In this document: positions 3,406 through 7,985 of the stretch, one piece after another
Position numbering within the stretch: the first letter of the stretch is position 1
Layout of the letters: each line of letters opens with the position of its first letter
Sequence record: NC_031927.1
Length of the DNA stretch: 64,000 nt
Direction: 5' to 3' (one strand)
Made by a program: the position numbers and the translations under genes
Notes under the pieces: model-generated
Databases searched by the model: none
The model's input: only the letters and a program-made list of their open reading frames with translations
Told to the model about the DNA's origin: nothing

Positions 3406-3436
3406 TATAAATACTAATAGAAAATATTAACTTATT

Positions 3437-4159
3437 ATGGCAGTTAACATAAGCGGTAATGGAGCTATTGAGGGTATTACTTCTTTTAATGGGGGCGGAC
3501 TTACCTTTCGTAATATACTCTATAATGGGTGGGTAAACACCAGTAATGAAATAAACCAACGTGGCAAAACAATATCCGAGGTTTCTGATGGAGACTATTG
3601 GGCTGATAGGTGGCAACGTGTTTCCTCTACGACAATGACCCAAAAAGTTGAAGAGGGTAACTATATACCAAATAGGACATATACGTTATCTGGTAATAAT
3701 GTAACAACAGTGCAGGTAACATCACCTGCCAGTGGAACTTGGAATTGGGGAACTGTTCCCTCCAATGCTTCATTGGTTCAGTTAGAGTTGGGTGATACTC
3801 CATCTGCTTTTGAATATAGACCCAAGGGGTTAGAGTTGGGTTTGTGTCAGAGGTACTATCAAAATCTCAATGTTAGAATGTTGTTAGATCAGGTGAATTA
3901 TTTATTTTCTTCTCGCAATTCTTATGTTAATCCAATGCGAACTGCACCATCAGTAGGTTTTACAGGTAAGTTAAAGTGGGATGATTTAATTACCGGGCAG
4001 TTAAGTTCTTCTGGATTTGATTCGGATAATGTTAATGTTTCATCTAAGGTGATTCGGGCAACACAATTTTACGTTTATGTTGCGTTGTCGGGGGTTCAGC
4101 CGAATGTCTTTAAAAGGTATCAATTTGAAGAGGCTATTAGCCTTGATGCCGAACTATAA
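3437..4159 (+). CDS. Putative virion/tail-fibre-associated protein, paralogue 2
   Basis: Same N-terminal domain as paralogue 1, different C-terminus, ends DAEL. TATAAATA at 3406. Confidence 0.8.
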   Translation: MAVNISGNGAIEGITSFNGGGLTFRNILYNGWVNTSNEINQRGKTISEVSDGDYWADRWQRVSSTTMTQKVEEGNYIPNRTYTLSGNNVTTVQVTSPASGTWNWGTVPSNASLVQLELGDTPSAFEYRPKGLELGLCQRYYQNLNVRMLLDQVNYLFSSRNSYVNPMRTAPSVGFTGKLKWDDLITGQLSSSGFDSDNVNVSSKVIRATQFYVYVALSGVQPNVFKRYQFEEAISLDAEL

Positions 4160-4190: not shown

Positions 4191-4865
4191 ATGTCAGTTA
4201 ACATAAGCGGTAATGGAGCTATTGAGGGTATTACTTCCTTTAATGGAGGAGGGCTTACTTTCCGCAATATTCTTTATAATGGTTGGGTGAACACCAGTAG
4301 TGAAATCAACCAACGTGGCAAAACAATAGCTCAAGTTTCTAATGGAAACTATTTTGCAGATCGATGGGAAAGAGTTTCATCCACAACTATGACCCAAAAA
4401 GTTGAAGAAAAAAATTATATACCAAATAGGACATATACGATATCGGGTACTAACGTAACAACAGTGCAGGTAACATCACCTGCTAGTGGGACTTGGGATT
4501 GGGGAACTGTGCCGTCTGATGCTTCATTGGTTCAGTTAGAGTTGGGTGATACTGCATCTTCTTTTGAATATAGACCCTATGGATTGGAGTTGAGTTTGTG
4601 TCAGAGGTACTATCAGTTTGCATATGCTAATATTAGAGGTAGGGGTGGGGGTATTTCTGAAAATGCAGTAACCTGGAATACTCAAATGAGAATAGCTCCA
4701 ACAATATTGCGCATTGCGGCAGCTTCAGGTGGAGGTCTCAATAATATAATTCGATATCTTGATATAGCTCCCTATGGGTGTCGTATGGAAGCAACAAACA
4801 CCCAACCTGGCGGTACGGAGAGTTATGCACTTGCGCAAATCTTGGAACTAAATGCTGAACTATGA
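4191..4865 (+). CDS. Putative virion/tail-fibre-associated protein, paralogue 3
   Basis: Same N-terminal domain, different C-terminus, ends NAEL. TATAAATA at 4160. Confidence 0.8.
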   Translation: MSVNISGNGAIEGITSFNGGGLTFRNILYNGWVNTSSEINQRGKTIAQVSNGNYFADRWERVSSTTMTQKVEEKNYIPNRTYTISGTNVTTVQVTSPASGTWDWGTVPSDASLVQLELGDTASSFEYRPYGLELSLCQRYYQFAYANIRGRGGGISENAVTWNTQMRIAPTILRIAAASGGGLNNIIRYLDIAPYGCRMEATNTQPGGTESYALAQILELNAEL

Positions 4866-4951: not shown

Positions 4952-5030
4952 TACAGTATATGAAGTGGTACATATTAATAGATGCCCCCAGACCCATGGA
5001 GTATAATAACAAGGTATTCAGGAGGTTGAA

Positions 5031-5192
5031 ATGACTCAACTTTATGATATAATCATTGAAGGACAGACAATTCACAAAGGTGTTTCGGAAGAAACCTTCT
5101 TTGATGTTATGTCTGACCTCTCAACAGCATATTATGAGAGGGGCTATCCAGATCCCTCAACAGTTTCCCACACAACTTACATTAAGGAGTAA
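5031..5192 (+). CDS. Hypothetical protein, 53 aa (MTQLYDIIIEGQTIHKGVSEETFFDVM...)
   Basis: My translation. AGGAGG RBS at 5020-5025 and TATAAT at 5002-5007 upstream. Confidence 0.8.
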   Translation: MTQLYDIIIEGQTIHKGVSEETFFDVMSDLSTAYYERGYPDPSTVSHTTYIKE

Positions 5193-5194
5193 CA

Positions 5195-5329
5195 ATGTTC
5201 GGCAAGACACAGGAAAAAATCGAAAAGGCTGGAAAAAAGACCCGTCAGGGTCGTTCCAACCGCACGAAACTCTCTGCAACTTCCGCGAGACCTAGGCAAA
5301 AGCGTTATCGTGGTCAAGGAAGGAGCTGA
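5195..5329 (+). CDS. Small basic protein, 44 aa (MFGKTQEKIEKAGKKTRQGRSNRTKLSATSARPRQKRYRGQGRS)
   Basis: My translation. AAGGAG RBS at 5184-5189. Resembles a small Arg/Lys-rich ORF I recall upstream of g25 in cyanomyoviruses. Confidence 0.8.
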   Translation: MFGKTQEKIEKAGKKTRQGRSNRTKLSATSARPRQKRYRGQGRS

Positions 5330-5394
5330 AATCCCCTTTTTAGTGCTCGAAAAACAAAACTAACCCTTTTTAGGGACCCTACCCCTTCGGGGTA

Positions 5395-5460
5395 TATAAA
5401 TATTTAAAGTTACGATGGGGATAGAACCCCCTTAAAAGTTCTAAAATGTAGTTTTTAGGA
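5395..5460 (+). promoter_or_regulatory. Late promoter followed by a leader with an H-type pseudoknot and an alternative RBS hairpin
   Basis: TATAAATA 5395-5402. S1 is GGGG 5417-20 with CCCC 5428-31. S2 is TAGAAC 5422-27 with GTTCTA 5438-43. Confidence 0.65.
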
Positions 5461-5468
5461 CAAATTTA

Positions 5469-5585
5469 ATGGGAAGACCCGTAGATCGCTCACCTGGCGT
5501 CGTTTTAGTCACCGATTATGGTGCTCTTGACCGCGCTCTCGCTCAAAAAGCTCGCCAAGAAGCCGAAAAAGCCAAGAAAAATTAA
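5469..5585 (+). CDS. Small hypothetical protein, 38 aa (MGRPVDRSPGVVLVTDYGALDRALAQKARQEAEKAKKN)
   Basis: My translation. AGGA at 5457-5460 upstream, and a terminator follows. Confidence 0.7.
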   Translation: MGRPVDRSPGVVLVTDYGALDRALAQKARQEAEKAKKN

Positions 5586-5594
5586 ATAATCTTT

Positions 5595-5621
5595 AAAAAA
5601 GCTCCTTCGGGGGCTTTTTTT
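5595..5621 (+). terminator. Intrinsic terminator, possibly bidirectional
   Basis: A6-GCTCC-TTCG-GGGGC-T7, with a cUUCGg tetraloop. Confidence 0.9.
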
Positions 5622-5626
5622 ATGCC

Positions 5627-5634
5627 TATAAATA
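5627..5634 (+). promoter_or_regulatory. Late promoter for g25
   Basis: TATAAATA. Confidence 0.85.
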
Positions 5635-6060
5635 ATGATAAATGTTGCTTATGCGATGGCTGACGTAAATCGTATCTCTAGATCATTCAAAGACATCAGT
5701 TTATCGTTCCAGCCACATCCTGTAACGAAGGATATTGGTGTTTTGGTCAATGAAAGGGCAATTAATCGGTCAGTTCGCAATATTGTTCAAACAATTCCTG
5801 GCGAAAAGTTTTTCAATCCACTATTTGGGTCCAATGTTAGGTCTCAATTATTTGAAAACGCCAACTATGCCGTTGCTCTTGCGATTGAACAGGAAATTCT
5901 TACATCATTAAGGAATTTTGAGCCTAGAATTGCTAATGTTGGAGTAACAGCTAATTTATTCCCAGACAGGAATGAGTTTGACGTTACAGTTACATATGAA
6001 ATTGTAGGACAAGCGTTTCCACCCCAAACTTATAACTTTATTTTAACGAGTACTAGGTAA
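5635..6060 (+). CDS. g25: Baseplate wedge subunit gp25
   Basis: FKDISLSF...ERAINRSVRNIVQT..GEKFFNPLFGS...FEPRI pattern, directly upstream of g6. The true start is probably ATG 5656, since 5635 abuts the promoter. Confidence 0.92.
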   Translation: MINVAYAMADVNRISRSFKDISLSFQPHPVTKDIGVLVNERAINRSVRNIVQTIPGEKFFNPLFGSNVRSQLFENANYAVALAIEQEILTSLRNFEPRIANVGVTANLFPDRNEFDVTVTYEIVGQAFPPQTYNFILTSTR

Positions 6061-7985
6061 TGGCTTTCACTAAGTTTACAAATTTAGACTACGATCAAAT
6101 TAGAGAGTCTATTAAAGATTATTTGCGAGCCAACTCAAACTTTAGTGGGTTTGATTTTGATGGTTCTAATTTTAGTATCCTTATTGATACATTAGCCTAT
6201 AATGCATATATCAACTCGGTAAATGCAAATATGATCGTCAATGAATCCTTTTTGGATTCTGCGACACTACGTAGAAACGTTGTTTCATTGGCTGGTAACA
6301 TTGGTTATCTCCCAAGATCACGCAAAGCTGCTAGAGCTAGAGTCAAGTTCACCGTACAGACCTCTTCTACGACCCCTACGTTGACCTTGAAGGCAGGTCT
6401 AGTTGCTGTTGGGTCAGAAGCTAACAGTAGTTACGTATTTTCCATTCCAGAGGATATTACGACCACTGTGGTGAATGGTGTTGCTCAGTTTGGAACTGAT
6501 GATGAGCCTATTGAGATCTACCAGGGAACATTTGCTAAGACATCATTTAATGTAGATACATCATTAGACCAGAGATTCATTATTGCTAACCCAGATCTAG
6601 ACTATAGTACTCTAGTTGTTAGGATCAAGGATCCTAATGAAGTTGGGTTGGGTAAAGTATGGGAGCGTGTAGAGAATATTATTAAAATTGATAGTAATAG
6701 TGAAATTTATTTCTTAGCTGAAGTAAACCAAGAGAACTATGAACTTCTATTCGGTGATGATATCTTCGGCAAAGCTTTACAGAATGGTCAAGTAATTGAT
6801 TCAACATATATTGTAACAAAAGGTAAAGAAGGTGATGGTCCAGCTAACTTTACATTCTCTGGTTCTCTAGTTAATGATAATGGAGCAATTACTGCACCTT
6901 CTAACGTCATCACTGTAGATACTCTAGAATCGGCTAGAAACGGTGCAGACATAGAGACGGTAGATTCTATCAAGTACTATGCTCCCCGCGTGTATGGAGC
7001 CCAATACAGGGCTGTGACGGGGCGTGACTACGAAGGCATCATTAAGAGCATCTATCCAAACACAGAATCCGTTTCTGTCGTTGGTGGTGAAGAACTTGTA
7101 CCCCCACAATTTGGTAATGTATTAATTAGTATTAAGCCAGTAAATGGTCTTGATGTTAGTGACTTTGATAAGAAGCAAATCTTAGATGGATTAAAGCAAT
7201 ATACTATTGCGGGTATTAATCAAAAAATTGTAGACCTTAAAATTCTATTTGTTGAGCTTGATGCTTCTGTATACTATGATGTTACTAAAGTTGGTAACTC
7301 AAATACACTGAAGACTGATATTATGCGGTCACTAAACTCATATTCAACTTCTATTGATATTAATAAGTTTGGTGGTAGATTTAAGTACTCTAAAGTGCAA
7401 AAAGTTATTGACGATACTGATATTGCTGTAACTTCCAACATCACTAAAGTTATTGTTAGAAGAAACCTAAATGCTGTTCTAAATCAGTTTGCTCAATATG
7501 AGCTTTGCTATGGAAATGCGTTCCATCCGATTGCATCTGGTGGTTCTATTAAGAGTAGTGGATTTACTATTGCTGGTTCACCATCCACTCTATACATAAC
7601 AGATGCTCCAAACAAGGATAATAATGGAAACTTGGATGGGTCTGGTATGGGTACCATATCATTCATCAGTGAAAATATTAATTCTACAGGTTCCTCCAAT
7701 TACATAACTGTTGTTGAAGATGCTGGCTTTGTTGACTATGCAAAAGGTGAGATTCAGTTATTTACTACAAATATAACCGGCACATCATTACCTAATGAGA
7801 TTATTGAAATACAAGCATATCCAAATTCAAATGACGTTATTGGATTGAAGGATTTATATGTCGTATTTGATGTTTCTACTAGTAGGATAAATATGGTTAA
7901 GGATACAATTTCTAGTGGTGAACAGATCTCTGGTGTTGGATTCCCAGTAACATCAAGTTACGGAAACGGCAAACTAACAAGGTAA
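6060..7985 (+). CDS. g6: Baseplate wedge subunit gp6
   Basis: LDYDQIRESIKDYL...FDFDGSNFSILIDTLAYN...ESFLDSATLRRNVVSLA and QYRAVTGRDY motifs. Confidence 0.95.
   Translation: MAFTKFTNLDYDQIRESIKDYLRANSNFSGFDFDGSNFSILIDTLAYNAYINSVNANMIVNESFLDSATLRRNVVSLAGNIGYLPRSRKAARARVKFTVQTSSTTPTLTLKAGLVAVGSEANSSYVFSIPEDITTTVVNGVAQFGTDDEPIEIYQGTFAKTSFNVDTSLDQRFIIANPDLDYSTLVVRIKDPNEVGLGKVWERVENIIKIDSNSEIYFLAEVNQENYELLFGDDIFGKALQNGQVIDSTYIVTKGKEGDGPANFTFSGSLVNDNGAITAPSNVITVDTLESARNGADIETVDSIKYYAPRVYGAQYRAVTGRDYEGIIKSIYPNTESVSVVGGEELVPPQFGNVLISIKPVNGLDVSDFDKKQILDGLKQYTIAGINQKIVDLKILFVELDASVYYDVTKVGNSNTLKTDIMRSLNSYSTSIDINKFGGRFKYSKVQKVIDDTDIAVTSNITKVIVRRNLNAVLNQFAQYELCYGNAFHPIASGGSIKSSGFTIAGSPSTLYITDAPNKDNNGNLDGSGMGTISFISENINSTGSSNYITVVEDAGFVDYAKGEIQLFTTNITGTSLPNEIIEIQAYPNSNDVIGLKDLYVVFDVSTSRINMVKDTISSGEQISGVGFPVTSSYGNGKLTR

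Follow-up and report, generated by a model that had tools for sequence, protein, structure and literature searches.

A conserved leader RNA ahead of a small gene in the baseplate region of T4-like cyanophages and its possible action as a pseudoknot/hairpin translational switch

We analyzed a stretch of 64,000 nucleotides from sequence record NC_031927.1 (hereafter the window, whose positions are used throughout), in which positions 5000-6100 are 100% identical to positions 67000-68100 of KU686212, the genome of Synechococcus phage S-CAM7, a T4-like cyanomyovirus (Kyanoviridae, Mazuvirus). The locus of interest is a compact late unit in which a leader separates a late promoter from a 38-aa ORF and which is followed by gp25 and gp6 (Table 1). 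A preliminary description of this leader had placed the promoter, the helix S1, the single-nucleotide loop L1, both strands of a second helix S2, the linker L3, the AGGA and the ORF correctly in the sequence. Judging from its sequence, the stem-loop downstream of the ORF is likely a terminator closing a one-gene late unit; a consensus terminator scan left it unflagged. The longest gp25 frame opens at an ATG at 5635, overlapping the second promoter, and a gp25 start at the GenBank position rather than at 5635 is plausible. Upstream of the unit, a 53-aa ORF (5031-5192, + strand, phrog_3252, hypothetical in KU686212) immediately precedes a very basic 44-aa ORF (5195-5329, + strand, phrog_516) that ends 'KRYRGQG..' and has Syn9 gp96 as its counterpart. 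Farther upstream lie two adjacent paralogous ORFs of 240 and 224 aa (3437-4159 and 4191-4865, + strand), with near-identical N-terminal and differing C-terminal halves, each preceded by TATAAATA (at 3406 and 4160).

Table 1. Features of the S-CAM7 leader and its surroundings, in window coordinates
Feature	Position	Strand	Remark
Short GC hairpin	about 5381-5393	+	Upstream of the promoter in the compact late unit
T4-type late promoter TATAAATA	5395-5402	+	Exact match
Leader, about 60 nt	Between TATAAATA (5395-5402) and the 38-aa ORF	+	Late unit
S1, GGGG/CCCC	5417-5420 / 5428-5431	+	Closes the 7-nt loop AUAGAAC (5421-5427)
L1, single A	5421	+	From sequence
S2 5' strand UAGAAC (proposed)	5422-5427	+	From sequence
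L3, A-rich linker UUAAAA	5432-5437	+	From sequence
GUUCUA, proposed S2 3' strand and start of the anti-RBS hairpin 5' arm	5438-5443	+	
Anti-RBS hairpin GUUCUAAAA / UUUUAGGAC	5438-5446 / 5453-5461, loop 5447-5452	+	RNAfold
Shine-Dalgarno AGGA	5457-5460	+	Wholly within the hairpin 3' arm
Optional outer helix, UUUAA with UUAAA	5465-5469 / 5432-5436	+	Suboptimal fold
38-aa ORF, ATG at 5469	5469-5585	+	KU686212 C490910_125, phrog_3602, annotated hypothetical
Stem-loop AGCUCC-UUCG-GGGGCU, then U run	5600-5621	+	Read from sequence
Second TATAAATA	5627-5634	+	Serves gp25
gp25	5656-6060	+	GenBank start; then gp6

The window holds 12 copies of the promoter motif where 6.2 would be expected, with 11 lying on the + strand, an excess consistent with NATAAATA as the known late promoter of cyanomyoviruses (PMC2984593). 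Transcription would then start at about 5408-5409, and about 8 unpaired nucleotides lie ahead of S1 in S-CAM7. Among 181 related contexts, 41% have a TAAATA whose end lies 8-11 nt ahead of the final G of S1.

Folded on its own, the S-CAM7 leader adopts S1 (dG -6.6 alone) and the anti-RBS hairpin (5438-5461; dG -8.4) in both the RNAfold MFE and the centroid, which contain these two elements only; RNAfold cannot model pseudoknots. S1 plus the hairpin comes to -15.0 kcal/mol, to -16.9 kcal/mol with the outer helix UUAAA/UUUAA, which extends the suboptimal fold as far as the A of the AUG, and the MFE is -17.1 kcal/mol. The hairpin proposed earlier as a 6-bp structure covering part of the RBS is thus present and does cover the RBS, but it is longer and more inclusive than described: it has 9 bp, and its arms take in the whole AGGA and the entire S2 3' strand. 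Since the latter falls inside the hairpin 5' arm, S2 and the hairpin are mutually exclusive, as had been suggested. The potential for S2 in S-CAM7 amounts to a 4-bp S1, A5421 as L1, a 6-bp S2 and a 6-nt L3. With z = -1.4 the fold of this single sequence is not exceptional, so that the case depends on comparison with relatives.

Such relatives are numerous. Between S-CAM7 and ACG-2014f (genus Atlauavirus), the 45 nt from S1 to the end of the hairpin are almost invariant, despite divergence of the promoter region and of the ORF's 3' half. Exact and degenerate pattern scans together with protein-based retrieval identified at least 250 distinct motif loci in IMG/VR (counts from IMG/VR and genome scans are lower bounds), and a covariance model, R1, built from 117 distinct family cores (alignment A3), found one strong copy of 40-50 bits in each of S-CAM7, ACG-2014f, S-RSM4, S-IOM18, S-CAM3 and Syn9, and no copy in S-PM2, P-SSM2, P-SSM4 or P-HM2. 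We found one copy per genome, with no second copies or paralogues in the same genome; an additional 20.5-bit R1 match in S-RSM4 lies antisense within a large structural-protein CDS and was rejected as chance. BLAST added about 20 further named cyanophages, including Prochlorococcus phage P-RSM1, in which the element mostly falls in unannotated intergenic DNA. Matches of the degenerate pattern in cellular genomes were likewise attributed to chance: an S1 of at least 4 bp is present in only 8 of the 120 matches listed, near the roughly 5% that we estimate for chance pairing of three unconstrained S1 positions, and none of the listed matches, which come from unrelated taxa, combines linker, hairpin and ORF context.

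The genomic context of the element is conserved as well. Throughout the family loci listed, it stands in front of a small modular ORF, behind which come gp25 and gp6, with the gp25 homologue about 312 nt downstream in 177 of the 182 loci listed. Because gp25 overlaps the small ORF in Syn9 and S-IOM18, the leader could set gp25 output there too. The RNA is missing from loci in which translation of the small ORF is coupled to that of an ORF upstream (S-H9-2, S-RIM44, S-RIM14 and five IMG/VR loci), which fits a role in initiating translation of the small ORF. A homologue of the basic phrog_516 ORF is found upstream on the same strand in 134 of the 228 motif loci listed, and its product, encoded near the acidic small ORF, is a possible RNA- or DNA-binding factor.

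Upstream reading frames also end close to the element. In 15 of 117 loci a long upstream ORF terminates at the UAG of the S1 loop (e.g., L136, L157, L158 and L160), and in 44 further loci of the 117 such an ORF ends at most 20 nt 5' of the element, so that terminating ribosomes could remodel the RNA. We rejected conservation as a by-product of coding, as the upstream stop varies in position and frame. The same arrangement bears on whether the element might be a 5'-terminal stabilizer or processing signal, keeping RNase E or RNase J off the late baseplate mRNA or marking a site of cleavage, rather than a switch of translation. Structures at 5' ends are known mRNA stabilizers, the T4 gene 32 leader among them, and in many phages the element sits within a few nucleotides of the predicted late start; however, an upstream ORF ends inside the element or at most 20 nt 5' of it in 67 of 117 listed loci, which makes the element internal to a longer message there, the S-CAM7 copy is preceded by about 8 unpaired nucleotides, and an arm that covaries while covering the Shine-Dalgarno (SD) sequence would be left unexplained. 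We therefore regard a stabilizing or processing role as improbable.

Comparison across the family establishes S1 as a real helix. It is 4-5 bp long, and among the 117 distinct cores the pair between positions 6 and 21 is AU in 42, GC in 33 and CG in 31, while the pair between positions 8 and 19 is GC in 87, AU in 26, UA in 3 and CG in 1, with no broken combinations. None of 500 shuffles reached the covariation score of S1.

The RBS-sequestering hairpin is a real helix too, although its sequence differs by lineage. Across the family, the longest ungapped helix that starts from GUUCU averages 7.4 bp, compared with 4.5 bp in shuffled tails, and reaches at least 8 bp in 60% of leaders vs. 3.5% of shuffles; its mean dG is -7.9, compared with -4.4 in shuffled controls. 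The 3' arm changes between lineages yet still pairs with GUUCUR and the bases that follow, positions 5-7 of the arm covary, and the arm pairs found include GAUUU/AAAUC, GUUUU/AAAAC, AAAA/UUUU, AAU/AUU and GG/CC; among close relatives, RNAalifold recovered the hairpin with one double change. Conservation of U·G pairing in the hairpin (142 of 183 at arm position 2) places the structure on the sense strand, that is, on the mRNA. In the MFE folds of 131 of the 186 leaders listed, GUUCU pairs with downstream bases and the SD is base-paired, whereas fewer than four bases of GUUCU are paired downstream in 36 of the 186, and the best local hairpin misses the SD in S-H38 (MFE fold) and in Syn9 (reading of the sequence).

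Together, the recurrence of the core in at least 250 loci and the covariation of S1 and the hairpin bear out the earlier proposal of a functional leader RNA, and the leader is a real, new cis-regulatory RNA family that was previously unannotated. We found no description of it in the literature, although PMC10690425, with its 10,006 unnamed candidates, may include it, and it is unlisted in the Rfam-based ncRNA annotation of S-CREM1, a phage that carries it (PMC9964418).

The sequences between and around these two helices behave quite differently. L1 (column 10) is A in all 117 cores; the proposed S2 5' strand has the consensus UAG-N-AAC, invariant in alignment A3, where N is C in 59 cores, A in 25, G in 18, U in 7 and absent in 8, S-CAM7 being among those without it; the four A's before GUUCU are invariant, within a linker of 6 nt in 103 of 117 cores and of 7-9 nt otherwise; and GUUCU is invariant, with G after it in 85 cores, A in 27 and a different base in 5. 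A scan pattern with an unspecified loop returned UAG-N-AA in 164 of 164 and UUCU in 163 of 164 matches listed, and 71 of the 80 listed loci retrieved by protein carry the strict core. Exceptions are few and uncompensated: in locus L308, GUUCC breaks the A12-U35 pair with the loop unchanged, and in five cores position 36 is C or U, neither of which can pair with the invariant U11. Covariation in homologous leaders, the check proposed at the outset, therefore came out in favor of S1 and the hairpin and returned no S2 covariation in the S1-free scan, the protein-based retrieval or the loop-free scan; with both S2 strands essentially invariant, covariation can neither confirm nor refute this helix.

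Other features also bear on S2. The contiguous invariant GUU·CUR is an exact complement of the two invariant loop triplets, UAG and AAC, the spacer base between these triplets is free in identity or absent, as expected of a bulge, and U11 is always U opposite G or A (UG in 85 cores, UA in 27), U being the only base that pairs with both. Moreover, GUUCU stays invariant in leaders whose hairpin partner is not the SD (L017, L049 and L129), which implies a constraint other than the hairpin. The geometry is sterically standard for an H-type pseudoknot, in which a 1-nt L1 spans 6 bp and an A-rich L3 of at least 5-6 nt runs along a GC-rich S1 of 4-5 bp. On energetic grounds S-CAM7 is the most favorable member, with its 7-nt loop and U-A pair giving the strongest S2 in the family (-4.3 kcal/mol as a duplex, initiation included); in 109 of the 117 distinct cores (about 93%) S2 would carry a 1-nt bulge, with a nearest-neighbor energy of about -0.2 kcal/mol including initiation, so that most members would need tertiary contacts or a partner for stability. 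By a rough estimate with textbook loop penalties, the S-CAM7 pseudoknot is a few kcal/mol less stable than S1 plus the hairpin, a difference that, if right, a modest stabilizing factor could tip. On balance, we lean toward the pseudoknot forming as a functional state.

The same data could be read without any pseudoknot, with the sequence of the S1 loop recognized specifically by a protein or the ribosome and GUUCUR acting as an anti-SD strand in a constitutive hairpin that damps a protein needed in low amounts. Invariant hairpin loops are typical protein-binding sites, S1 and the hairpin make up both the MFE and the alignment consensus, and S2 lacks covariation and is weak in most members. Under this reading, however, the complementarity of two triplets to one 6-mer would be a coincidence of about 1 in 4096 per register, and the variable or missing spacer base and the U always facing R would be coincidental as well; GUUCU should not be fixed where its hairpin partner is something other than the SD; and a plain anti-SD hairpin could covary freely, the way its distal half does. 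We consider this reading unlikely, if worth keeping in mind.

What we favor, with modest confidence, is that the leader works as a pseudoknot/hairpin translational switch set by a trans-acting partner. In the model that follows, this cis-acting RNA of T4-like cyanophages, represented in S-CAM7 by the segment at 5417-5461, would control translation of the first small gene in a 'small ORF - gp25 - gp6' baseplate-wedge block. Its first part, the short GC-rich S1 hairpin, would present the invariant loop A-UAG-(N)-AAC; its second would be the A-rich linker followed by the invariant GUUCUR; and its third, the lineage-specific 3' arm, would pair onto GUUCUR, normally holding the SD and sometimes reaching the start codon. 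In the putative OFF state, GUUCUR would pair with the 3' arm and bury the SD, whereas in the putative ON state it would pair with the S1 loop to form an H-type pseudoknot with a 1-nt L1 and an A-rich L3 lying along S1, leaving the SD free. The balance between the two may be set by a conserved trans-acting partner that reads the core, be it a small ligand or a factor from host or phage, and we think such a partner most likely because the core is frozen while S1 and the hairpin covary freely, a pattern typical of RNAs that bind ligands or factors. A two-state scheme of this kind is plausible; we infer the formation of S2, the assignment of ON and OFF and the existence of an effector.

A switch made of RNA alone would dispense with the partner: a pseudoknot formed during transcription could allow each new transcript a brief spell of translation before the more stable hairpin takes over, or the balance could respond to temperature or Mg2+. 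The 5'-to-3' order of the elements would let S2 form before the 3' arm is synthesized, the late-promoter core just before S1 in 41% of contexts would put the element at the extreme 5' end, and the hairpin state in S-CAM7 (about 15-17 kcal/mol) is similar in order to the energies of helices S1 and S2. Such a device needs pairing rather than particular bases, however, and about 20 positions of the core stay the same between phage genera in which S1, the hairpins and the proteins have all diverged. We accordingly hold a switch without a trans-acting factor to be rather unlikely.

A further candidate for the trans-acting role is the encoded protein itself. All 138 distinct downstream ORFs belong to a single small-protein family with a modular build, comprising an N-terminal module ('PVDR...WGT..L.TDYG') and acidic, aromatic C-terminal modules of type 1 (with 'DYDDWEYGTEP', encoded in at least 570 IMG/VR loci) or type 2 (with 'GFDDYVERW'). 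All combinations of these modules occur (e.g., in L142, L173 and L223). The S-CAM7 ORF consists of the N-terminal module only, while the ORFs of L223, L246, L143, L160 and others consist of the acidic C-terminal module only, behind an identical RNA core. A Pfam search with the small protein returned no match, PHROGs places these proteins in families without assigned function, a protein atlas returned viral hypothetical clusters only, and an AlphaFold2 model was poor (pLDDT 66, pTM 0.26). Belonging to a single family of this kind, the regulated genes offer no clue to a ligand.

Autogenous control of the T4 gp32 or E. coli S15 type, in which the small protein would bind the RNA core and repress its own translation, was suggested by the analogy to gene 32 drawn in the preliminary description, and the RNA's exclusive position ahead of members of this family (138 of 138 distinct ORFs) is in keeping with it. 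Yet no protein module is common to all of the regulated ORFs although the RNA core is identical, which makes autoregulation by the encoded protein unlikely, and the proteins are acidic or neutral and have no recognizable RNA-binding domain, with a poor structural model (pLDDT 66) besides. We judge autogenous control to be the most improbable of the explanations considered here.

T4-like cyanophages are among the most abundant viruses of the ocean, and to our knowledge very little is known of post-transcriptional control of their late genes. The element described here is among the most strongly conserved non-coding sequences in the cyanophage structural gene region, its anatomy resembles that of a riboswitch, and with about 55 nt it offers a compact, testable system in the cultured phages Syn9, S-RSM4 and S-CAM7. 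It raises the questions of whether phages monitor the condition of their host cell as baseplates are built and of what the widespread small protein before gp25 does. If a ligand exists, its aptamer would be among the smallest known; if not, the leader would be a clean natural three-strand device (anti-anti-SD / anti-SD / SD) of translation control.

The resemblance to riboswitches can be stated more specifically. The family follows the generic pattern of an invariant core, a covarying peripheral stem and a variable expression platform, and the core of about 30 nt may be the aptamer of an undescribed orphan riboswitch class of very small size, specific to T4-like cyanophages, with a preQ1-I-like fold and translational ON logic. 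We rate this as a doubtful proposition, though one that, if true, would tie the output of a baseplate-associated small protein (and of gp25 where coupled) to some metabolite or ion in the host during infection. The preQ1-I aptamers of Tte and Bsu are small H-type pseudoknots in which AAC makes up the end of the P1 loop, immediately ahead of the P1 3' strand, followed by an A-rich L3 and then a short P2 3' strand, with a conserved core and a translational platform. The cyanophage family shares the AAC before the S1 3' strand and the A run, both of them invariant, but differs in having A rather than a U-containing L1, a loop of 7-8 nt instead of 10-11 nt, no queuosine gene context, and a pseudoknot that would free the SD rather than hide it. 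The preQ1-I pocket is built from a cytidine of L2, a uridine of L1 and an adenosine of L3; in the cyanophage RNA the AAC and the A run are present, L1 is A, and the loop C can pair in cis with the invariant G31; if S2 pairs fully, G31 lies opposite this last C of the loop, leaving no L2 pocket as in preQ1-I. The preQ1-I model RF00522 (gathering threshold 39 bits) had no match at the motif locus of S-CAM7, Syn9, S-RSM4, S-IOM18 or ACG-2014f at E values up to 10, nor when run on an 81-nt region.

More generally, no Rfam 15 model reaches its threshold at the locus, long-loop SAM-II and GP20-b giving the best of the weak matches. The long-loop SAM-II model (RF01726) scores 18.4 bits against a cut-off of 44 with its 14-nt loop insert missing, and gave no match in five related leaders (E up to 5) or in a consensus-like member (E up to 10); moreover, long-loop SAM-II RNAs lie upstream of genes of methionine or SAM metabolism, whereas the ORFs downstream here are a phage small-protein family. 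GP20-b (RF03003), an RNA with two hairpins, matches partially, in the 3' hairpin only, at 13.2 bits against a cut-off of 36.2, but it was absent from the five cyanophage genomes searched, R1 in turn had no match among genuine GP20-b RNAs, and the hosts and gene contexts of GP20-b differ from those of the cyanophage leader. With sub-threshold scores and failed reciprocal and genome-wide tests, we rejected filing the leader under SAM-II, GP20-b or preQ1-I, and attribute the resemblance among them to a shared design: a GC stem (4-5 bp) whose loop terminates in AAC, then a run of A's and a G. Note additionally that in the genuine GP20-b RNAs examined (e.g., locus L561, 5413-5474, from IMG/VR) the loop of the second hairpin contains a GGC complementary to the GCC after the A run, so that GP20-b, too, may form an H-type pseudoknot of the same general design.

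The comparison drawn initially was with the T2/T4 gene 32 leader, and it holds for geometry: like that leader, the cyanophage RNA would place an H-type pseudoknot, with a 1-nt L1 crossing an S2 of 6-7 bp (6 bp in S-CAM7) and an A-rich second loop of several nucleotides, in the 5' leader of a T4-type phage message under translational control. It does not extend to the gene, the operator logic or the autoregulator. The gene 32 pseudoknot nucleates cooperative binding of gp32 on an unstructured AU-rich tract and has no competing RBS hairpin, whereas in S-CAM7 a 9-bp covarying anti-RBS hairpin competes for the S2 3' strand; and the gene 32 effector is the gene's own product, an ssDNA-binding protein, whereas the S-CAM7 gene encodes a 38-aa phrog_3602 protein for which autoregulation is unlikely. 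According to PMC10690425, the gene 32 pseudoknot is without an Rfam model that could serve for a homology test.

Closer parallels lie in mechanism. The leader of E. coli rpsO, which encodes S15, equilibrates between a pseudoknot and stem-loops, and its regulator selects the pseudoknot; there, however, the gene's own ribosomal protein is the effector and acts by trapping the 30S subunit on the pseudoknot, whereas the proteins here share no module, and the cyanophage pseudoknot would lie upstream of the SD without containing it. In the add riboswitch of Vibrio vulnificus, the 5' aptamer competes with the SD for the anti-SD strand, and stabilizing the aptamer frees the SD; that aptamer, a three-way junction whose ligand is known, regulates a purine metabolism gene, in contrast to a core of only about 30 nt here. 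Translational ON riboswitches such as add, together with the pseudoknot/hairpin equilibrium of rpsO, are the closest mechanistic analogues of the proposed cyanophage switch.
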